From: Ginkgo biloba
Taxonomy: Eukaryota > Plantae > Ginkgophyta
Length of the DNA: 20,862 bases
Direction: 5' to 3'
Assembly: GCA_024626585.2 (NCBI GenBank)
Contig: JANKJI020000004.1
Location: 14,403,180 to 14,424,041 of the forward strand
Positions 3,852 through 20,319 of this stretch are shown piece by piece (within the stretch, counting starts at the first letter, position 1; every line of letters begins with the position of its first letter). A model generated the notes under the pieces. The model ran no database searches. It saw only the letters and a program-made list of their open reading frames with translations, and had not been told where the DNA came from. A program made the position numbers and the translations under genes.

Positions 3852-4724
3852 GAGAATTTTATTCAACACTTATCATGGTATGAACTTAGAGTTTGAATTT
3901 AAAGTGTTGGGCTTATGAACTATGACCATATTATGCAGGACTTGAAGGGATTGGTATGCTAGGTGGGCCCCCATCATTCAACAAGAGTATCATTACTCAA
4001 TGATGCCACCCTCATACACAAATTATGCACATGAACAATCAATAGAAAGAATTATAGCTAAGGAAAATACTCTATGAGCAATGATAGTTTTGAATGATGG
4101 AGAGAATTATAATCTTTGTAGAAAAGGTGAAAAGAACAAAAGACTCGGAGATTTAGAAAAGGAAGAATGGTCTTTATATTGTTATTTGAGGTAAGATCTT
4201 TTTCTAGGAAGATCTTACATTCCAAGGGCATATAAAGTTGAGGAGGGAAGTGGAAAAAATGCACATAGCAAGGAGAGATGGAAGACATGCAATAATGTAA
4301 GATTGAAAAGTCTTCATAGAAGACTTTTGAAAGAAAAATTAACAAGGGAAAATATGTAGTAGTAGATAGGAAAAGTAAAGATTTAGAGGCTCGTATTTTA
4401 GAGCCCAAAACGTAAGTACTAAACTCACAACTCTTGTAAAACTTTGATACTTGTTTTGGTCTATGGACATTAAATAATACACCATTTTATTTCATTTCAA
4501 ACTTCATCTATTAGGGATCCCATATCTAACATACATGTATCATCCTCTTATTGATCTTTAGAATCAATCATATCCACCTACGCGGGTTCAAAGAATCGAT
4601 TCTTCATGTTAGTGATTACATGGAATTGATTCTCCCCATTGAACCTTTGGTCGTAGTGCAATCGATGCTCATCTCTAACCTAGTGATGAATTCCTTCTAT
4701 CATTATTATTTCATTTTCATTCTT

Positions 4725-4917
4725 TTTAGTATGTGGGGTATTGGTAAGCTCGTTTGCTTCGACGCGAGAGGTGCGGGCTCAAATCTGGCCTACCCCTATT
4801 CCCACAGCCCGGGCAAGTGCCCCCCCACTATCCAGACATGGTAAATTGGGGAAATGGAACCTCAGTCCGGTGGATATCAACCCAAAGCCATGACCATTGC
4901 GCCAAACCCTCGGGGGC
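4725..4917 (-). mobile_element. tRNA-derived SINE (193 bp) with a 15-bp target-site duplication
   Basis: Perfect flanking direct repeat ttcattttcattctt at 4710-4724 and 4918-4932. The minus strand starts GCCCCCGAGGGTT, with box A TGGCGCAATGG (4904-4894) and a box B-like GGTTCCATTTCC (4861-4850) 32 nt apart. It ends in a short A tail and is GC/CpG-rich against an AT-rich background. Confidence 0.85.
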
Positions 4918-5500
4918 TTCATTTTCATTCTTATACGCCATCATATCTGAAGATCAATTACGTCACCACATCATGTTCATATAGAGCATCCAACTCAGGC
5001 ATCCTATCACCACACAATTAAATCAAATGTCTATTCGTTCCACCAATGAATGGGACAAACATCTATTTATATAAATTTGTGGCCGGGAGAGTGAATGCTA
5101 AAAATACAAGTATTAATAATGTTGAAAATAGGGTGGCAATTTTGTTCCTTATATCTTAGAGACCAAATGATCAATCAAAACTAGAACAACAATTAATGAC
5201 CAATGAAAATCAAACAAAGGTTGCATAGAACCTCACCAAACAAAGCTTGAATCCTTTTGCAGATTTATTTTTAACTATTTAGGCTTTCTACAACCATGTG
5301 AACCCTCTTTAATGTTTTGGGCGTAGTCTTAGCCTTTTGTAACCTCAAAAAATCACTTCTACATCTCACGGATGTTGGGCGAGACTCTTAGTTGTAGGTG
5401 NNNNNNNNNNNNNNNNNNNNNNNNNNNNNNNNNNNNNNNNNNNNNNNNNNNNNNNNNNNNNNNNNNNNNNNNNNNNNNNNNNNNNNNNNNNNNNNNNNNN

Positions 5501-5631
5501 AATTTGTTATCTAGATCAATACCTTATTAACTATTTGAGACATGCAAGTATTTGAGATTTATATTAGTGGAAGGCAACCTATTGGATGGTCCCATTCCTC
5601 AAGCATTGATTAATGCACTTCCTTAAAATTT
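5501..5631 (+). pseudogene. Plant LRR receptor-like kinase/protein ectodomain fragment 2
   Basis: From 5501: NLLSRSIPY*LFETCKYLRFILVEGNLLDGPIPQALIN, then (C)TSLKF after a 1-bp frameshift. It continues fragment 1 and overlaps it by about 30 bp. The left end is hidden by a gap. Confidence 0.8.
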
Positions 5632-8600
5632 GGTAGAGATATATCCTCTCTATGAAATCCCTAGGTGTCGTAGACCCAAAATTTAGTTAAAAGTAGTTAG
5701 GAAAAGTAGCATTTGAAGTGATAAAATACTTATCTAGAATCTTCAATTTTAGATTTTTAGGCATTTGGGATCTCAGTGGATGCTAAATGATTAAAAATTG
5801 ATGAAAAACCAAATGCAAGTCCATTTTTAGTCGACAAAATGGAAGAGACCATTAAGGTTCTAGGATTTGGAGGTTCAGATGGTAAAAAAATGTCATCCCT
5901 ATCAATTCTAAAGACCTCAATGAGTTATAAGCACTAGTGAAAGAGAGAAGGTGCATTTGGGTTTTGAGTAAAGGTAGCGCTTTAGATTCCATGAGTTTAG
6001 AATGATATGAATAAATACCACCTCATATTTTCCCCATAGAATCAAAAGGAAAATAGTGACCAGTTGATTAGAAAAATAGGTCTAAATTCCAACAAATATA
6101 GTATTCATAGTTTATGACTCTAACAAATTTGGTCACCAAATATATAAGAGAAGTAACAAAGTAAGAAAATTTCTTGAATAGTTTGAAATCCTTAGGTTGA
6201 ATTTGACACATGTTGTTGGTAGATTTGAATATATGAAAAACATCAAAACTTAAGATTCAAGTAAAGAATAATGAATATTATAGTCTTTTCATCTAACATT
6301 GATTTGAGTGTTGACATTCATAACCCTATTCAAAGGAGGTGTTATATTATTGGCATACAAGTATCACTTTCAAAATTATTTCCTATCTTTATTAAGGAAA
6401 TCCAAATATATATATCTATAGGGAGTCTATAATTTATATGAAAAAAAATATGTGCGCTTGAGCCCAAGGAGGAAAATTCATGATTCAAAGAAAGAATTTT
6501 CTCAAAGCAAGAAATAGTTGAAGAGGTGACTTTTACTAGTTAGTTTTTATTTATGGATAATTGTTCTAATGGTCTAAGAAGAGAGACAAGATAAAATAAG
6601 TGGAGAGAAAAATAAAAAGGGTTCCACCCAACTCTATTGGTGAGAAAATTATCATGTGTCCCATCCTTTATGTATTCATGTACCTTGTGTTTTCTTACTT
6701 ACAGTCAACTTATCCTTGATGTGTATATTTTCTTTCCTCATAAATTTTGATCAGGAAGGTCACCTTAGAGACCCTTTATGAACCTAAAAGTATTCTTCCA
6801 TTATGGTTGTATTATAATTTAACCTATATAGGATAGCACTTTTGTAATATTTTCCTTCATATTAATTTAACTCGAGGCAATAGGTATCAATGAAAATAGT
6901 TTTATAAATGTATTTTCTTTCTTAGTGATAATGTGATGAATGTGTATGCTTATATTTCATGCATTATGGGTATTTGATTGTGAATCCATATTGTCCATTT
7001 CATTAAATAAATTCCAATCAAATTCTCAAGTGAGTATTGCTACTATAAAGCTTAGATTGGAGTTTATATTAGTGTATATTTATTATGATTATATGTCACG
7101 TGTTGTTAGCATATGATAATGATAAATTGCCTAAATTTGCAACAATATGATCATACATGTAAAATGTCTTATTTCCTTTCTTGTGTTTACATTGAAAATT
7201 ATTAATTATAAAGAATTGATATACTATTTGGGACCAAATCACTTTAGCACCAAGAATATAACCTTTTGGTTGTCTTCTTTGAGTGCTCCTAGAGTTTGTT
7301 ATCTAAAGGATTTTTTAGCTCTCAAGAAAATATATCTTCACTTTTATGTACTCTTAAAGCATTGTTGGAGAGCTATGAAGTAAAGCTAGTGATATATTTT
7401 TTTACTCAGACAATCAAGAACTGTTGGTGATCTCGGATTAGGGTGACATGGTTCATTGTCCCTTAAAGGCTTGAAGTGCTTGAAATACCTCCCTTATATC
7501 ACTAAGAGAATACTTAAGAGGGTGTTCATAGTTAAATGATCTTCAAGTATTTCTTTTTCTCATTTTTATTCTCTTTGTGACTACATCCTACTCTGTTGTT
7601 AGTGTCTGAACATTTAATATTCTATCTAGGGGTATTGATAACAAATTATTTTACCATTTGTATTTCCCTTAAATGATTTGTTATATTATTTCTCTTTCCA
7701 CTGAAGTAAAATAGAAATAAATGTGAAACAATTTTGAATACCCACTATAGATACCATCCCTATTTGTATATTCTTAATATTTTATAATGAGAGGGATACC
7801 CTTCATTATAGAAGATGAAGTTAATATTCCCCTCTATTATCATATTTGTGATTCCATTCCCCTTGGCATATGATCATACTAATTTTCATCACTAGTACAC
7901 AAATTCCTAGCAACAACTACTTTCTTCTATACTAGTATATTTATTTATTTTTAATTAGTTATTTCCTACTATTTTAATATAGGGATAAATGAATGACGAT
8001 GACACAAAATAGGAATAAGAAAACTCATGGATAAAATTTAGAAACCCATCAAATGTTATAATTTTATCTACGATTCAACTACTATTTAATAAACATATTA
8101 TCATGTGTTGAGTCTAGTACATGCCTTCATATGCATCTATCTTGTACTTAATTATGGTGGTTGTGTTTACAATAGATGGAAATATACTAGCAAATACTTC
8201 CTTATTAATTAATCACATGAGCCATGCCCCATGGAAAGATGATCCATCCATTTAAATATGGTATATTTCAAAATGTATATCCAATATTTCATCAAACATA
8301 AAAAATATTTTATTTTCCTTCCACCTACTATTTAAAAATTCTATGTTAACTAAGGTTTATTCATGATTGAAGAGTTATTATTTATGGAATTTGATGTCTC
8401 TACACTTCTTTATTATGAAAATAGATGTTTAAATTCTAGGGATTTGGTAGCTACTATTATTCATGCGTTTTGACAAATTTTAGAAATTAGAAGCTACAAT
8501 ATTATAGATTGATTTTTAGAATTTAAAAGGAATGTTTTCTATTTGAAAATGTATATTATGTCTTAATAATGGTAAGGTAATAGTGTCCAAATGATTCACT

Positions 8601-11600
8601 AAGGATATTGACGATAGAAATCAAATTTATGAGTTTATATTCAGTATAGAATACATTAAAGAGATATGAAAGGTATATATTTGTTGCCTAAATTCCTTTA
8701 TGATTCATAGAATATTATGTTATTTGTAAAATATGAGGAAGGTTGAATGAGTTAATGAAAGAAGAAGAAATAGTTATTTGGATATGAAGTAGAACTCTTA
8801 CAAAATTATTTTAGTTTTATATGGATAGTATAAGTCCATCTCTTGATATATTATATTTTAATTCGATATTAAATTATATTACTATTATCCATCAAATTTT
8901 TATGCTCGATATATTAAGAAATGGGCACAAGTCACTTTAGTATTTATACAAGTCACTTTAATATCTATTCTTTGAGTAGTCTCTACTCAAAAAATATTTA
9001 ANNNNNNNNNNNNNNNNNNNNNNNNNNNNNNNNNNNNNNNNNNNNNNNNNNNNNNNNNNNNNNNNNNNNNNNNNNNNNNNNNNNNNNNNNNNNNNNNNNN
9101 NTAAGATTTAATAACTTTACATGTTTTACTAACGTCTTTTTGCCATTTGTGGATCCATTCTTTATATTTTTATATCTATGTATATATATACCGATATAGA
9201 TATATATAGATATATTATATCAAAATATGTATAATAATTATTTAATTAGTTATGATAGAGGGTTTAGACTTTGAACACTTTATCATACCAATCTTTAATA
9301 ATAGGGAATTGTATGGGCCCACCAATATGGACCCCATAATTCCTTTTTTCACTAATTGAATTCATTTCTATCACTTAGCTATGGAATTAAAATAGCTCAC
9401 AATGTATTTCCTTGTGAGTAATAAGAAGAATTATTAAAAATATATAAAAGTGCACTTAAATATAATCCACTGCATGCGACATTCTACATTGCTCTTTGAC
9501 CAAAATTTTTCCTTATATTTTCTATCACTTTGAGATGAAATTATTTTTTGTCATTAAGCCACAATGTCCTATTACTGAGCGATAAATTATTATTGTAAAG
9601 AAACAAACCCATCAGGACAAAAACAATGATGGATGTAAGTGATAGATAATTTATATCATGATTTTATCCTTTCTCTATTAGTATATTGTAGTATAAATTT
9701 GGAGTATCTTAGATCAAAATCATAAAAGGAGAGATCGCCTACGACTATTGAGATAAAATTTTGGTAGGATAGGGTCAATCATACAATAATAATAATTAAC
9801 AACACCTTTCATGCAATTATTTCACCATAATTAATAAAATAAGCCACCTAACCTTATCTATATATAGGTCTTCAATGGTTCCAGGAGTTTTCGATATGTT
9901 TTACAAGCTTGATTATCCTTCTACACAGTTCACAAGATCTAATTTCACCTTCCCCAACCCTTCATGTATATATAAATTCTATAGAGTCTTTAGGAATCTT
10001 GATTCTACTAAATTACTCCATAGATTTGCAGTATGACAAATTAGCTCACAATTATGTAGAATTACTCTATGCTCAAATTTGTTATACTACAGATTCATGC
10101 GCATTTCTGAAGTGTTTCTTTACAATCACTCATAAATCCACTATGGAGGCCTTTTTAGTTGAAATAAAATAATAAAATCAGAAAACTAAGCAATTAACAT
10201 TCTTCTTGGAATTCTTGGTTTGCTTCCAACCATTTGGGTTTCAGAAATCCTAACCCTTGCATCTTCCATAATGTCAATGATGAGATTCAAGAGATTCAAG
10301 AGATTTTTCTTTTTATTGATTAGGACCATTTAGACCATCTTATTCTCCCCTACACTTTATATTGGCGAAATGCATTTTTTGTTGAGGGGTAGTGTGGGTT
10401 AAAGTTTCCCTAAAACATATTCTTAAAGTTTAGTTATGCCTTTTTTGGGTGGATTGAAAGCCCTTATACTAGCATATGAATTCATTAAGAGTAACACCCT
10501 CATCCAAGATTTTTGATGCCATTGGGATATCTTAGGTTTGTTGTGTCATAGATTCTCGAGGCTACTTTATGGGAGACTCAACTATGGCCTCATGTTCTTT
10601 GTTTCTTTAGCATCTTTATTACTCTTATGATTTGCCTCTTTGGATACACAGAAATAAGGAATACCACGCACATATTTTGCCACCTTTACATTCACTCATT
10701 GTTTAGTGGGTTTTTGATTGGCACCATAGAATGTTTTGTCTTGGTGGCTTCACATTCCTTTTTCCTCAAGCNNNNNNNNNNNNNNNNNNNNNNNNNNNNN
10801 NNNNNNNNNNNNNNNNNNNNNNNNNNNNNNNNNNNNNNNNNNNNNNNNNNNNNNNNNNNNNNNNNNNNNNNATTATAAATTTTAACAATAATTTATAATT
10901 ATTTTTTACTTATATTGATGTGATTATAAGATATAAAAAAAAAAATAGTTTTTATTTTAATTTTTAAATATACATGACTAGTTAACTAATAGTAATCTTT
11001 ACATTAAATTTATGGGTGTATGACTTAACCTATATATTTTGTCTCTTAATTTTTAATAAAATAATTTAAAAATAAAATAAGTATAGAACAAAAAAATATG
11101 AGCACATTTATGAAGTGATAAGAACAAAATGATAAAAAATCTAGCTAACATTATTAACATTTAGTAAGGTAAACAATGCCACTACTTGAGGGGTATATTC
11201 TACAGAGAAATTCAACACACCTTTATTTTTTATATTTCTATAACATGATTTGGAGAAAACAATAATATTTGTTTTTGAAAATAAAAGATTTAGAAATCCT
11301 TTGATAAGTAGAAATTTTCATCTTTTAACATCGAGTTTAAATTCTTAAAGGAACTATGACTGATATACCATTGAAGGGATAAAAGCACCATTTTTCAATG
11401 AAATGCCTCTATAAAATATAAAAGGAAAAGTTGTCAAGCGATCTTGTTAACATCCATACCTTAGTAGGTATTAGGTTGTATCTTTCTCTAATACCAATTA
11501 TAACATTCTAAATGGGATAGTTACAAAATAATTCAGAGAACTAATAATCATAAATAAAAGTAAAATATATAATTCCAAAAAATTGATCAAGTATTAGTAA

Positions 11601-11916
11601 TAATCCCCAAAAAAAATTCTTGTAGTGATCAATTATAAAATAAATTTCATTGTTATTTATTAGATCAAGAGAAGAGTGAGCAGAAGATAAATGGGTGTCG
11701 AAGAACCTACTACCCATAAGAATGTTTATAAGGGGCATCTACTTACCATGATGGTCTTCAACTTATTGAATTCAAAGAAGAAATGTTGTATTATGATATG
11801 ATCAAATAGAATGAGAGAATGATCTCCATTTATCCCTCAAACTTGAGTGCCAAATTTTGGCTACATGCAGGTTAATTGGGGTGATGTTTTGTTAACTAAT
11901 TTCTCCTTAAGCTAAA

Positions 11917-12003
11917 TGTTAGAATATTAATGAAAATTCTAAAGCTTTTAGAGTTATCCACAAGAGTATCTAGATTATTGTGTTACCCTCAATTATGTTG
12001 GGT
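11917..12003 (+). repeat. 5' LTR (visible part; the rest is in the N gap)
   Basis: Matches 13616-13702 and starts with TG. Confidence 0.85.
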
Positions 12004-13615
12004 NNNNNNNNNNNNNNNNNNNNNNNNNNNNNNNNNNNNNNNNNNNNNNNNNNNNNNNNNNNNNNNNNNNNNNNNNNNNNNNNNNNNNNNNNNNNNNNNN
12101 NNNNNNNNNNNNNNNNNNNNNNNNNNNNNNNNNNNNNNNNNNNNNNNNNNNNNNNNNNNNNNNNNNNNNNNNNNNNNNNNNNNNNNNNNNNNNNNNNNNN
12201 NNNNNNNNNNNNNNNNNNNNNNNNNNNNNNNNNNNNNNNNNNNNNNNNNNNNNNNNNNNNNNNNNNNNNNNNNNNNNNNNNNNNNNNNNNNNNNNNNNNN
12301 NNNNNNNNNNNNNNNNNNNNNNNNNNNNNNNNNNNNNNNNNGTCTATAAGAAATGCAATGATTCTAGATGAATAGTGGCCAAGGCCATGGGATGTTGTGA
12401 AAAATACAAATTAGATCTGAATTGAAGAGAAAAGAAAGGATAGTGAATTGGTTATTTATCCTCTTGTAGGATGTCCTATCATAGAGATGTAAATAAAACC
12501 AAGTAAATGCACTAATCAAACAAGTAAGTATATAGATGAAGGATTGGGATACATTTTAGTTTCAAATTTTGAATAGGACTATGAGCTAAAATTCATTACA
12601 AAGACGATGTGATAATTTTGGAAACAAATTGAAGCAGGTGTGGAGATCAGAGAACTAAACATGTGGCATATGCCTGAGACAAAGAACACCTACCATAGAT
12701 CAACCATAGATTAGAACTAATCGATGTAGCAGATCAATGCTATACACGCAACTCACAGAGAAAAATTGCACGATGTCAAAATTAAATGCGACAATTTTTT
12801 GATATTTATTTTGGAAAAATTAATTATTTTCAAATGTTTGACATCAATTAAATTCGATTGGAATTTAATTTTAAATCTATCTTTTTAGCTCTCAAGTCAA
12901 AGATCAATGTTATATGGAGAAAATCATGCGATTGGGTACTTTAAAAATATGAATTTTCAAGCTAATTTAATTTTACCCTACCTTTGATTATTGTTTATAT
13001 CATATCTTCCACATATAGAGTCTAATTTCAAAATCATCTATTCTATTAAAAAATATATTCAGAGAGCTTTGATTCGGGTATATGGATGATCATATTTGGA
13101 GATATCTAGTTCTATCTTTTTAATGTTTGAAGTTGAGTAAATAAATTTTTGGTGTTATGAAAAGGATCCAAGTAGAAATAATTTTTTGTTTATAGAAATA
13201 TATTGGAAAATCCATCAAACAAAGTCATTTACGAAAAGAATTTGAGATACTATATCTTCTTATAGCAAAAAATTAGGGATAGTGCTCAGAACTTGTAAAT
13301 TGGTTCATCAAGAACTCATTTGTTAACCATTCCAGAATCAAGTTATAAAATGGACATAAGATGAATAATTATAGGGATGAATACAAGGACAAATATTGAA
13401 TACACAAAAGTACGAGATTGAGGTGGAGACCAAGATTGAACCAAATTTGAGAAGCACGAAGATTGAGGACTATGAATACGTGATCCATGATATATGATGT
13501 CATATATATAAAAATGTAAATGAGTACCTAATCAGCTATAAAACCCAAAGAGGTAAGCAAGAACCATATTCAATCAAATGTAATTTGTCATATAGAAGTT
13601 GTCATTAAGGGGGGA

Positions 13616-13923
13616 TGTTAGAATATTAATGACAATTCTANNNNNNNNNNNNNNNTCCACAAGAGTATCTAGATTATTGTGTTACCCTTAGTTATGTTGG
13701 GTGAAGTGTTACCCTTAGATTATTTACATAAGCCAAAGTTTCAATATAAATATATGTATTGTCTAAGTGTTAAGTTTATTAGTTAGATGAGTTGTTGTGA
13801 GTCTCAAGTGATGTAATATTGTACATGTGCAATGTGAACAATTGTTAAATTTTACATCTTATGTGTTTTGTGCTTATTGTGCTTATGTGATTATGTGATT
13901 GCATTGTGATAGTCATTTTAACA
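13616..13923 (+). repeat. 3' LTR, 308 bp
   Basis: TGTTAGAA...TTTTAACA inverted termini, preceded by the PPT, with a TATAAATA motif near 13745 and a TG-rich U5-like end. Confidence 0.85.
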
Positions 13924-14059
13924 CTAAGGAACATATGAAACCTCCTTTTAAGCCTTTTTTAAGCATGTTTAATTTTTTTATTAGACTTCTTAAGGCTATA
14001 TCTTTAATATAACTTGGGTTAGGGCTCCTTAGTATCAAATTTTCACTTTAGGTCATAAT

Positions 14060-14078
14060 ACACACACACACACACACA
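14060..14078. repeat. (AC)n microsatellite, about 9 units
   Basis: acacacacacacacacaca seen directly. Confidence 0.95.
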
Positions 14079-14486
14079 TTTTATATATGTAATACACTTT
14101 CTATTATTAGACTTGAGTATCATTTTGACTCATTTTTTAAACTATGGTATATAATAATTTATCTTATTTAATATAATAAAAAGGGAAATATTAATTGAAT
14201 TTAAGTAATAGTAGTTTGAAATGTATCTTGCCTTTAAATTCCACAACCTCCATGTCAATTTTATTAAGTCTTTAAGAAATATTTACAACATTGAATATAG
14301 TTACTATATGCTACACAAGCATGCCAACTAGAAAAGAAAATAACTATGAACATATAAGCAAGTATGCCAACTTCATTCATAATGAATATCTTATACTGAA
14401 TACTCCATTTATCATTAGTTAAAAAATTACATTATTTTAATTCCCAATATAATGTAGAGTAAGGTACAAGTACTAAAAATCAGCAT

Positions 14487-14859
14487 CATGATAATTTTTG
14501 ACAAAAGTTTGTCTTCACTCGAAGCTGTGACTAGATTTTTCCAACTTTTATTGCCATAAAAATAACATTCAATGCTAGTGGTCACTCACATCATAAATTT
14601 TTTTTCGAAATGGAAAAATATTCTAAAATGGTCACTTAAGGAGATGTGACACACCACAAAATGATAAATATGTGATTATCATGATGCAAATACTAGCAAT
14701 GAATAAAAAAATTGTGAATCATTTTAATTTTCCTAAAGATTTTCTCTCAACTTTGTCAAGGGTCTATTTGTATGTACAATTGCAAAGTCCCTAACCTTAT
14801 CAACAAGGAGGAATATCTTTCAAATATTCAAGGCATCGGAAGGAGACCTATCACCATAT
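14487..14859 (+). mobile_element. Possible highly decayed L1-type LINE reverse-transcriptase relic
   Basis: Motif remnants in the expected order across shifting frames: HDN (14487), FIAIKI (14547), FNFPKDF (14723), LIN (14796), GI/EGDLSPY (14832-14859). These resemble IxDN..MAIKID..FGFPxxF..LING..RGIRQGDPLSPY. Judged by eye only. Confidence 0.4.
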
Positions 14860-14999: not shown

Positions 15000-15306
15000 T
15001 CGTTGTCCAATTTATACGCTAAAATCCGCGGCCGTATCAGATGTCCTGAATTAATTAACATTTGTCGAATTTGCAAGGTGGCACAATGAAGATCACACAT
15101 TTCATTTTCACACTACAGTAGGTTTACAGAGACAAAGGACGCAATACTTATCGCGTTTGTGTTTCGGTATACAGCGTCTACACGGGAATGGGGATGCCAC
15201 TGCTTATTCCCCTATATAAGCCCTACGCCGTTCCATCATTTTTCATAGCAGAGCGCTTTACTTGCATTGTTTTGAAGGTAATTGGTTTGAGCGTGATAAA
15301 GGATGG
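15000..15306 (+). promoter_or_regulatory. Probable RNA Pol II core promoter and 5' UTR of a gene whose body lies in the following gap
   Basis: Local CpG-retaining island in otherwise CpG-poor DNA. CCTATATAAG TATA box at 15211-15220, pyrimidine-rich initiator-like TCA about 25-30 nt downstream, and ATG at 15303 in good context (A at -3, G at +4) immediately before the N run. Confidence 0.55.
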
Positions 15307-16132
15307 NNNNNNNNNNNNNNNNNNNNNNNNNNNNNNNNNNNNNNNNNNNNNNNNNNNNNNNNNNNNNNNNNNNNNNNNNNNNNNNNNNNNNNNNNNNNNN
15401 NNNNNNGTAGTACTTATTTTTATAAGTTATTCTTCTTGTTACTCTATTCCATTGTATTCTTGATTATTATGATAATTCTTTGCATCCTAGATATTATTAT
15501 GCCTATCATAATCCATTTTTAAGCTACCATTTCATATTGCACTTATTGTTTGGATCTTATAATTTTTTGTTCTTTATGAATTATTATTTTTTCTCTAAAT
15601 TATTTAGTATTTTTTTTATTTGGGATGCTATAAGTTATATTAGAGTAATAAGGATCTTCGATTAATATTAGTATATGCTACTAATAAGACAACATGCCAT
15701 GAATAAAATATAATAAAAAGAGAAACTTCTAAAATAAGGTAAGGGAATAGTGGATAAGCTAGAGTACTTGAGCACTGAGATAGAAGCATAAAATATGAGC
15801 ATGAAGTCTTATCTATAGAATTTAAAGGGATTTTAAAGAATTAAGACACAATAACTTGGAGATTAAGTGGTTGAATGTTGTTTCATCAAGAATAAGAGAT
15901 TCTTGAAGAGTTATGAAGAGATAGTAACAATAACCATGATAATGATTTCATTGAATATTATCGTAGGATCTCATATATTTTATAGCTAAAAGTTCTAGAC
16001 TATAGTGAGAAACCACTATAAACCCATGACTAAATAAGTAAGATAAAAATTACATTGAAATAAGTAGGATTGCTCTAGTAAATGGAACAAGTTTGGATAA
16101 CCATTCAATTTATAGAAGGACCTACATATACA

Positions 16133-16561: not shown

Positions 16562-16769
16562 NNNNNNNNNNNNNNNNATAATTGAGGATTACATTAAGAA
16601 ATTCTAAATCATGAAGGAAAAAGAAAATATGAATGAAAATGATATGTGAGAATTTTATATTACTAATTTAAAAGTTAAAATTAAAATAAATATGAGAATG
16701 TTCAAACCTAAGACATTAGTAAATGTAATATTTATGCTTATCAGGTAGAATAAATGTAGTAATCCTTTT

Positions 16770-17460: not shown

Positions 17461-17677
17461 TTATTTTAATGATTATAACTCATGTTCTTTCATGGAAAAA
17501 TCCATTCATCCTTGTAATCCATTGTACATTCAATGGGTTAAGAATATTATTATAGATGTAATTAAATAAGGTCATGCNNNNNNNNNNNNNNNNNNNNNNN
17601 NNNNNNNNNNNNNNNNNNNNNNNNNNNNNNNNNNNNNNNNNNNNNNNNNNNNNNNNNNNNNNNNNNNNNNNNNNNNN

Positions 17678-17885
17678 TCAAGGTATTTGGAGAGAGAAAG
17701 AGAGTGTCATGGTTGTGATACTTGGGGTAGTTCCTATCAAGGAACTACCCCCTCATACTAAGAGCATTGTGAATTCTCTTAAACATGTGCATATATCTCG
17801 TGAATGGTTCTCTCTTGTACTTGTGCTGGTTCGTCACGGATTTATCTTCCTATTGGCAGGAGTTTGTCAACATTGGCGTCGTTGC
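17678..17885 (+). mobile_element. 3' end of an LTR plus tRNA-Asp primer-binding site (Athila-like Ty3/Gypsy)
   Basis: LTR-like end ...TGTCAACA at 17872, followed after 1 nt by TGGCGTCGTTGC (17874-17885). That is 11/12 identical to TGGCGCCGTTGC, the complement of the plant tRNA-Asp 3' end used by Athila elements. The left end is in a gap. Confidence 0.7.
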
Positions 17886-19583
17886 AATTAAAAAGAGTTC
17901 AAGGTCACAACTGTGAAAAACTCTGCCTAGACAATGACGTGTATATTCATACGTGACATGATTCAGATTAATGTGAGAAGGTCCAACAAAACCCAAATTC
18001 GTAAGAGGCTATGATGATATTATGTAACCCAAATAAAGAGTGGTTCATAAAGTGATGGTAGTAACATGAGCAGTAGACCCATGTATTAATGTTATGAGGA
18101 GAACTATCAAGCTCATAGTAATATTCTATTTTAGCTTCTTTGAGGTCCGTTGAACCCTTTGAGTTCTCCTCGATTAAGATAATTTTCTTTCTTTGTCAAT
18201 AGAGACTCCATTATGTGAGATAAGAATATCAAGAACTACACCATTTGGCCCTATTAACAATGCCTCGAAGCTAGCAAAGGGAAATGTTTTTACAAGTGCT
18301 AAGAAGTTAAGGGGTGAAATTCATCGAGCCCTCCTAGACATGAAAAATGCTTCTTCCATTATTGGCCTTTCACTTGAAAGAAACAAAGTGACATAATCCC
18401 CTACATCTAACACCATGCATTGCATTTTCAATATCAAGTACTAATGTCTTAGTAGAAATCCCTAGAATAGGTGAGGCTTTGCACTGTGACCAAGTGAAAT
18501 GCCTTCTAGAGAGGGTTGAAGAAGATGCCCCCTTCAAGTCTTTAGACACTATGTCATCTTAATAAATTTAGCCTCCCCTAGCAGGGTATTGGCCCTAACA
18601 GCTAAAAAATAATTTATGCTATGATTTATAGCTAATAGTAGTAACTTGACTACAAATAAATATGATCACACCATGGAGTAGAGAATGACCATAGGATACC
18701 ATAATTTTGAGATGCCATCTAATGGAAAAAATGCTGATCTAAAATGTGGGATCTTAGGTGGTAGNNNNNNNNNNNNNNNNNNNNNNNNNNNNNNNNNNNN
18801 NNNNNNNNNNNNNNNNNNNNNNNNNNNNNNNNNNNNNNNNNNNNNNNNNNNNNNNNNNNNNNNNNNNNNNNNNNNNNNNNNNNNNNNNNNNNNNNNNNNN
18901 NNNNNNNNNNNNNNNNNNNNNNNNNNNNNNNNNNNNNNNNNNNNNNNNNNNNNNNNNNNNNNNNNNNNNNNNNNNNNNNNNNNNNNNNNNNNNNNNNNNN
19001 NNNNNNNNNNNNNNNNNNNNNNNNNNNNNNNNNNNNNNNNNNNNNNNNNNNNNNNNNNNNNNNNNNNNNNNNNNNNNNNNNNNNNNNNNNNNNNNNNNNN
19101 NNNNNNNNNNNNNNNNNNNNNNNNNNNNNNNNNNNNNNNNNNNNNNNNNNNNNNNNNNNNNNNNNNNNNNNNNNNNNNNNNNNNNNNNNNNNNNNGTTGT
19201 TATGTTGTGTCTCAGTATTATATTTCCATGACTATGTAAATTGTAGATTGGTCAAAAATGATAAGTGCAACATTAGTTGCGAAGGGGCCCGCAACTGTGG
19301 TGAATCTTTTTGTCTGACCAAGGACTGGAATTACAATAGTGATAATATCGACTACAACAGACAAATTCATGCAGACAACAAGCAGAGATCATTCTAGAGA
19401 TGCACAGATTTAGATCGACAACACACCTTGGAGTTTTTTAATTCTGGTTCTTTTTCAGGCTAAGGTTTTTCTTCAAGGCAAGCAACAACAACCTCATTGT
19501 TACGACGACAAACAAAAGTGACCACTCACCCACCAATTGGAGAAGTTAAATGATTGTCTAGACAGTGAAATCAAAATAAATTT

Positions 19584-19718: not shown

Positions 19719-20319
19719 AATGGAAATGTTGCATTAAAATTAAAAATGGTTAATGCAATGCACTTCATAATCAATGGTGGTCCTTTTCACAACAAATCCA
19801 GTATCTAGTGTGGTTACCTATAAGACTAACGATCACTACGATTGGTAACTTAAGCAAACCAATAAATGGCATCTACACCATATGGATGTTCTTGATTTCA
19901 TTGAAGTTGGATACTGAGATTAGTTACCAAGGCACTATAGAAGAAGATAAAGATAATGTTCTAGACTATTTTTCACTTACTTATCTTAGGACAAAGACAA
20001 GAGTTTAGGTGTGGGTGAGTGTTGGATGATAAATGTTAATGTGATATTTCTATATCACTTTATGTATTAATGAGTAATTATGTACTGAGGGAAGTTAGAG
20101 AGTTCAATAAAATCAACTACCTACAAATATGTGTATAGGATGTTGATCAAGAGGGAGGGTAGGAGAGAGAAAAAATTCATGTATATAGTCATGAGAAAGT
20201 CCTGAGACTCTCAGGACTGCATCCTAGTCTAATACATGANNNNNNNNNNNNNNNNNNNNNNNNNNNNNNNNNNNNNNNNNNGGTGTTATAGATCTTGATC
20301 TCTATTGGTACCAAATCCA

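Follow-up and report, generated by a model that had tools for sequence, protein, structure and literature searches.

Short interspersed elements (SINEs) that are derived from tRNAs and end in an A tail are well known from plants, e.g. p-SINE1 of rice, S1/SB of Brassica and the SolS families of the Solanaceae; the survey of plant SINE families by Wenke et al. in 2011 is reportedly the source for elements of this type. The Angio-SINEs, said to have been described by Seibt et al. in 2020, reportedly carry a 37-bp Angio-domain near the 3′ end. In the known dimeric SINEs the two units are arranged head-to-tail, e.g. in Alu and in the Twin SINE of Culex. A dimeric SINE is also reported from the shrew-mole (PMC13023118). 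The Au-like SINEs have box A at nucleotides 13-24 and box B at nucleotides 57-67, they end in a T run or in (GTT)n and they have a 3′ end in common with the RTE LINEs (Nishiyama and Ohshima 2018, PMC6007223).

The window, by which we mean the whole 20,862-nucleotide stretch of Ginkgo DNA that was analysed, hosts one SINE copy of 193 bp on the minus strand (4725-4917). The copy is bounded by a 15-bp target-site duplication (TSD), TTCATTTTCATTCTT, the left copy of which (4710-4724) is identical at 15 of 15 positions to the right copy (4918-4932). A repeat search found this direct repeat to be the only repeat within 4600-5050, which bears out the TSD-bounded element described in the initial annotation. 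The GC content of the SINE is 56%, against 32% in the flanks. On the minus strand the element ends in a short A tail, AAA (4725-4727), or five A if the first two bases of the TSD are included; on the plus strand this is a T run at 4723-4727. Read in the orientation of the SINE, the duplication starts with AAGAA after a T, an L1-like feature. TTTT is absent from the sense strand inside the element. The reading that we favour, and hold to be probable, is that 4725-4917 is a genuine one-headed, A-tailed, tRNA-derived SINE, and that a tRNA look-alike on its plus strand (4735-4797) is a coincidence or a structural by-product.

These ends also bear on whether the element could be a small DNA transposon (MITE), the two ends of which are alike because both are tRNA-like. 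Both ends do open with G-rich, TTGG-containing stretches in inverted orientation, but a search of 4600-5050 with a 7-nt seed found no inverted repeat at the SINE, and a TSD of 15 bp is what LINE-mediated insertion typically leaves, whereas the TSDs of plant MITEs measure 2-10 bp. We regard the probability of a MITE as close to negligible.

The head of the SINE (4848-4917, minus strand) is probably tRNA-derived and holds an internal Pol III promoter, as judged from a relaxed ARAGORN search, a covariance model (CM), copy number and a 5′ end that is common to the family. Its box A, TGGCGCAATGG (4904-4894, SINE nt 14-24), matches seven of the seven specified consensus positions, and its box B, GGTTCCATTTC (4861-4851, SINE nt 57-67), matches seven of nine, in line with the head that the initial annotation placed on the minus strand. 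In most copies box B reads GGTTCCATTCC, which raises the match to eight of nine with the majority letter at 4852. The two boxes begin 43 nt apart, a tRNA-like spacing, and lie near the 5′ end; their pair score of 14/16 is equalled by 5% of shuffles. ARAGORN calls the head as c[4840-4911] only at a relaxed threshold of 84-85%, at which just 2% of 2,000 dinucleotide-shuffled versions of the SINE yield any match. In a tRNA CM built from 22 class I tRNAs of E. coli, and run unfiltered on the whole window, the head scores 9.1 bits (E 0.7) and comes second. The Rfam tRNA model, proposed earlier as a check on both strands, matched neither the head nor the look-alike in this copy at E<=10, even when the head half, or an 81-nt stretch with the look-alike, was scanned alone. 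As the accepted head is missed as well, Rfam is not discriminating here, and we rejected it as an arbiter of tRNA ancestry. The head also contains GCTTTGGGT, which we take to resemble the anticodon loop of tRNA-Pro in the wrong register.

From these features a conventional route of retroposition can be proposed. Directed by the single internal promoter of the head (nt 14-24 and 57-67), Pol III would begin transcription at the 4917 end, the endonuclease and reverse transcriptase of a LINE would nick an A/T-rich target, and reverse transcription primed on the A tail (target-primed) would leave the 15-bp duplication. Transcription from the head by Pol III and mobilisation by a LINE are both presumed here from what is known of SINEs in general. 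The plus-strand resemblance to a tRNA would most probably be a coincidence, with some help from a closing stem rich in G, which can form in the sense RNA too, and the plus-strand unit presumably has no function.

Alignment of Logan contigs from one DNA run to 4560-5080, at 80% likeness, reveals the modular make-up of the family. Contig depth is approximately 9.4 in the unique flank, 150-930 over the 3′ part (4722-4847) and 4,500-14,500 over the head (4848-4919), i.e. the head reaches approximately 500-1500 times the single-copy depth and the 3′ 120 nt only approximately 15-100 times. The head is therefore common to far more copies than the 3′ module, and the 3′ body of this SINE (4725-4847, minus strand) is, by contig depth, present in a minority of the family. 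We interpret the 3′ 120 nt as a subfamily-specific body, and 3′ modules as rarer alternatives attached to an abundant head. At each position 51-102 contigs lose their match at 4916-4918 and run on into unrelated AT-rich sequence; this sharp boundary is the 5′ end that the copies of a large family have in common. Full-length relatives are present too, e.g. a 360-nt contig spanning 4723-4915 with 26 differences (approximately 86% identity). The check for other genomic copies that was suggested for this element thus comes out positive, with contig depth and shared ends confirming a multi-copy family. Four 'joints' that skip approximately 4747-4845 were rejected as evidence of deletion subfamilies, because the letters between are not known.

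The depth profile can also be read the other way round, with a plus-strand SINE whose head is at 4735-4797 and in which the highly repeated 4848-4917 is a conserved LINE-type 3′ domain, common to many families and without an A tail. Depth climbs toward 4917 and ends sharply in hundreds of contigs, as at the 3′ ends of 5′-truncated retroposons, and the sequence directly beyond 4917 is T-rich, as in T-tailed SINEs of the Au-like kind. However, depth does not change smoothly but jumps approximately 5-15-fold at 4848, the A run is at the 4725 end, the minus strand of 4848-4917 combines a box A without any mismatch (nt 14-24) with a box B that is nearly perfect (nt 57-67), and ARAGORN calls this head at a threshold that few shuffles pass. 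A reversed orientation is therefore extremely unlikely. It had also been suggested that the element might retropose in either orientation. The 4917 end of this copy is without an A tail and the flanks there are unrelated, AT-rich and in low agreement; a sharp end at 4916-4918, with an A run at the opposite end, fits retroposition in one orientation only and goes against that suggestion.

A protein search that covered 1.84 billion representative sequences found one relative of the minus-strand reading frame through the SINE, the Ginkgo biloba gene model Gb_22804, with 78% identity over 45 residues; by eye the likeness extends through the 3′ module (residues approximately 6-70). Because the relative is a Ginkgo biloba gene model, the SINE family lives in Ginkgo. 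The N-terminus of Gb_22804, a protein of 178 amino acids, is a translated full-length SINE copy including the 3′ module; this is an exonised SINE or else an error of annotation. Two further matches to the minus-strand frame were rejected as unrelated tandem-repeat proteins, and two plus-strand reading frames had no match in the protein database. Pfam had no match among the long ORFs of the window. Ten runs of N break up the window (5401-5500, 9002-9101, 10772-10871, 12004-12341, 13641-13655, 15307-15406, 16562-16577, 17578-17677, 18765-19195 and 20240-20281), several of them exactly 100 long, and the ORFs at 11930-12349, 11980-12375, 15188-15463, 17574-17891, 18685-19239 and 18758-19231 were set aside as artefacts because they span N runs.

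Searches elsewhere returned no further relatives. The 20,862-nt window holds no second copy of the SINE and a scan of viral sequences for further copies gave nothing. When metagenomes were scanned with a degenerate 20-mer from the 3′ module, 32 loci came up, none of them at a tRNA gene, in which the likeness was limited to the 20-mer; a 19-mer of the head gave seven matches in bacterial and archaeal genomes, all due to chance. In the literature, a search for the sequence words of the SINE gave chance primer matches only, and a search for papers on Ginkgo SINEs found none.

The initial annotation took the perfect TSD and the retained CpGs as signs of recent activity. This is not what we find. 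At 4849, 4852 and 4874 the copy has letters other than those of the family majority, and at several more positions of the head it differs from approximately half of the copies; CpGs have been lost, with an observed/expected ratio of 0.60; and the stretch 4400-5250, with the insertion, is represented in at least 17 runs (those that hold at least half of the sampled words, among 20 holders from 8 studies). The copy is an old one and not young. The flanks at 4650-4685 and 4938-5080 are mildly repeated as well (contig depths of 14-18 and 25-113, where unique sequence has 9.4), and one contig connects 4683 to 4957, skipping the SINE. These two observations suggest that the SINE sits inside an older repeat whose paralogues are without it.

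We now turn to the plus strand, where the 3′ third of the element was proposed to look like a whole tRNA. All of the motifs listed for it are present on sequence check, at the coordinates given. The look-alike, as recovered by the CM, by relaxed ARAGORN and by a custom score, spans 63 nt (4735-4797). It has an acceptor-like stem of 6 bp, GGGGTA/TACCCC (4735-4740 with 4791-4796), a box A-like TGGGGTATTGG (4734-4744), an anticodon-arm-like TTTGC/TTCGAC/GCGAG (4753-4768), a variable-loop AGGT (4769-4772), a T-arm-like hairpin (4773-4789) and a box B-like GGCTCAAATCT (4776-4786), which is separated by 31 nt from the box A-like motif; an acceptor-like CTACCCC follows at 4790-4796. Only part of the 'whole tRNA' claim can be retained. 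In the CM the 3′ third is tRNA-like about as strongly as the head, but it has no D arm and its 'anticodon' loop is 6 nt long. There are further defects: the T stem contains a G-G mismatch, and in the box B-like motif the near-invariant T54 is replaced by C and C62 by T.

A 9-mer of the look-alike, GCGAGAGGT (4764-4772), had been described as characteristic of plant tRNA-Ala and tRNA-Pro, and published sequences agree: in wheat, tRF-Ala-AGC and tRF-Pro sequences start with it (PMC8722339), as do tRNA-Pro sequences in Arabidopsis (PMC7544208); in both tRNAs the 9-mer stands at the beginning of the 3′ half. By hand count, the 3′ half of the look-alike agrees with the Arabidopsis tRNA-Pro sequence of PMC7544208 at approximately 22 of 34 positions (approximately 65% identity). 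A second explanation is that the SINE is a composite with a passenger relic: the founder of the subfamily would have taken up an inverted, already decayed tRNA (Pro- or Ala-like) or an inverted SINE head in its 3′ region, e.g. when Pol III transcribed a master copy and continued into the DNA beside it, and the relic would have no promoter function. The 9-mer and the identity to tRNA-Pro favour this, although in a stretch of such length chance would be expected to produce a 9-mer in common with some tRNA, and the head itself holds a tRNA-Pro-like word. An origin of the look-alike as an inverted copy of this SINE's own head was rejected: there is no inverted repeat, and only approximately 40% of positions agree (tRNA-model alignment, hand count).

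Whether the resemblance goes beyond chance depends on the test, and the tests disagree. The CM, which was not tailored to the candidate, speaks for a relic, ranking 4735-4797(+) first in the 41.7 kb of strand searched (10.3 bits, with E 0.31 at the level of the window), above the true head. As a control, both strands of 88.7 kb of GC-rich DNA were scanned; apart from the tRNAs themselves, matches of at least 10.3 bits occurred only antisense to real tRNAs and at one locus, which had been chosen because it holds the same 20-mer. Most of the 10.3 bits come from the 6-bp stem, since G-rich hairpins on their own, at other places in the window, reach 7.5-7.7 bits. One hairpin of the window, at 17723-17752, is a perfect 12-bp stem, GGGGTAGTTCCT atca AGGAACTACCCC, to which the CM gives, through the stem alone, 7.5 bits on one strand and 5.7 bits on the other; it is followed by CTCATACTAA, with a loose likeness to the 3′ end of the SINE (13-nt match, E 5.6).

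Strand has to be considered as well. The antisense strands of real tRNA genes, from E. coli tRNA clusters, score 8-17 bits in the CM, so the strand of a weak tRNA-like match has to be checked before the match is taken for a relic. For the look-alike, the minus strand of the same stretch has no CM match at E<=10, and since antisense tRNAs reach only 8-17 bits the signal is specific to one orientation, a further point for a relic.

A custom cloverleaf profile score reproduces the ranking of the CM. Dinucleotide shuffles reach the score of the look-alike in 0.3% of cases when made from the 3′ part and in 0.8% when made from the whole SINE, i.e. a composition-matched p of approximately 0.003-0.008 in favour of a relic, and one of 348 natural GC-rich windows of 123 nt reaches it as well; against this, the score is post hoc, having been designed after the candidate was seen, and the element was chosen by an earlier reader out of many.

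Standard tools place the look-alike at noise level, which argues against a relic. At its default ARAGORN finds no tRNA anywhere in the window, and it reports the look-alike only from a threshold of 76% down, in a range where the pass rate of shuffles rises from 9.5% (at 80%) to 25% (at 75%). At the threshold of the look-alike it makes 21 matches in the window, approximately one per kb. At 75% the look-alike is given as a 'possible pseudogene' of 63 nt, in which the D arm is vestigial and the loop has 6 nt; a four-arm cloverleaf with a 7-nt anticodon loop was found at 4735-4797(+) by neither of the standard finders (ARAGORN at default, Rfam). The box A-like and box B-like motifs have a pair score of 13/16, which 18% of shuffles of the 3′ part equal (p 0.18), and the minimum-energy fold contains no cloverleaf (z -1.26). 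Relaxed ARAGORN at 85% also calls a 'tRNA-Arg(cct)' at 7100-7168; it is AT-rich and without convincing stems, was rejected as noise and shows the noise level of relaxed searches.

The letters found in other copies cut both ways on the tRNA-likeness of the look-alike. In the family majority 4751 is A (87% of depth) and 4755 is G (66%). Both letters disrupt the anticodon stem; when they are put in, ARAGORN no longer finds the look-alike at thresholds down to 60%, while the head stays at 84-85%; this worsening of the anticodon arm counts against a relic. On the other hand, approximately half of the copies carry G in place of A at 4781 and C in place of T at 4786, and since both restore CpGs, 4781G and 4786C are probably the ancestral state that preceded CpG decay. 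They make the T loop more canonical (GGCTCGAATCC), raise the custom score from 3.2 to 9.0 and move the ARAGORN threshold from 76% to 80%, so that the inferred ancestral T arm is more tRNA-like, as expected of a relic. Taken with the absence of a D arm and the 6-nt loop, we consider the passenger relic a tentative explanation, possible but on the unlikely side.

A third explanation goes considerably further. In the initial annotation the element was a tail-to-tail composite of two tRNA-derived units that could be transcribed from both ends, giving sense and antisense RNA, and might retropose either way. In such an element there would be two working, convergent Pol III heads. The placement of the motifs is in its favour: measured from the 4725 end, the box A-like motif lies at nt 10-20 and the box B-like motif at nt 52-62, as expected of a head; the first plus-strand TTTT past these boxes (4922-4925) is just outside the SINE; and the tRNA-likeness of the look-alike equals that of the true head in the CM. 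Yet the box B-like motif has the wrong letters at T54 and C62 and varies freely across the family by CpG decay, the box pair scores at chance, and the 4917 end has AT-rich, unrelated flanks in place of an A tail. What survives of the composite is thus a weak plus-strand resemblance to a tRNA; the standard finders and the defects of the arms speak against a second working head.

The sampled RNA comprised approximately 2% of a total/other RNA run and approximately 6% of a polyA run, and within this sample there were no reads from the locus or its flanks. The few RNA reads that aligned were less than 95% alike and come from other copies. Those of the total/other RNA run cover the head alone, equally in both directions, with none on 4722-4830, and in the polyA run four reads span another copy. 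This absence of reads is weak evidence because such libraries are poor at catching Pol III RNAs; it nonetheless lends nothing to transcription from both ends, either at this locus or from its 3′ part. Two working heads are in our judgement very unlikely. We give as little credence to the more specific version, in which the 3′ module is a true inverted tRNA unit that still binds TFIIIC and would thereby produce convergent Pol III transcripts, dsRNA and siRNA.

The SINE that we favour, with one head and an A tail, is useful mainly for the annotation of a gymnosperm genome whose SINEs are poorly catalogued. If the look-alike were a true relic, it would be a rare case of a SINE body made from an inverted small-RNA gene, and only if this relic also drove transcription would it bear on double-stranded RNA from SINEs and on silencing.

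How does the element compare with described systems? In the look-alike, as in the genes for plant tRNA-Pro and tRNA-Ala, GCGAGAGGT comes before a hairpin that is T-arm-like and an acceptor strand that is rich in C. Unlike these genes the look-alike is 63 nt long, it has no D arm, a loop of 6 or 10 nt, a G-G mismatch in the T stem and C at T54, and it is not called by ARAGORN or Rfam. If the look-alike is a relic, the element would combine, as the dimeric SINEs do, two units derived from small RNAs in a single retroposed copy, although the candidate second unit in Ginkgo is inverted and without a D arm, and the arrangement is not head-to-tail. The Au-like SINEs are close in the position of the promoter, with the boxes of the Ginkgo SINE at nt 14-24 and 57-67, but the Ginkgo element ends in A, and not in a T-rich or (GTT)n tail. 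The A-tailed, tRNA-derived SINEs of plants, with which we compare it by description only, differ in that the Ginkgo SINE has a gymnosperm host and a 3′ body with an inverted tRNA-like stretch. It resembles them in its length of approximately 200 bp, in the boxes A and B that lie within a 5′ head probably related to a tRNA, in a body that is particular to the family, in the shortness of its A tail, in a TSD of 10-20 bp and in hundreds to thousands of dispersed copies, with heads that are common to subfamilies with different 3′ parts. An abundant, conserved head that is combined with rarer, alternative 3′ modules fits the known diversification of plant SINEs by the swapping of 3′ ends.
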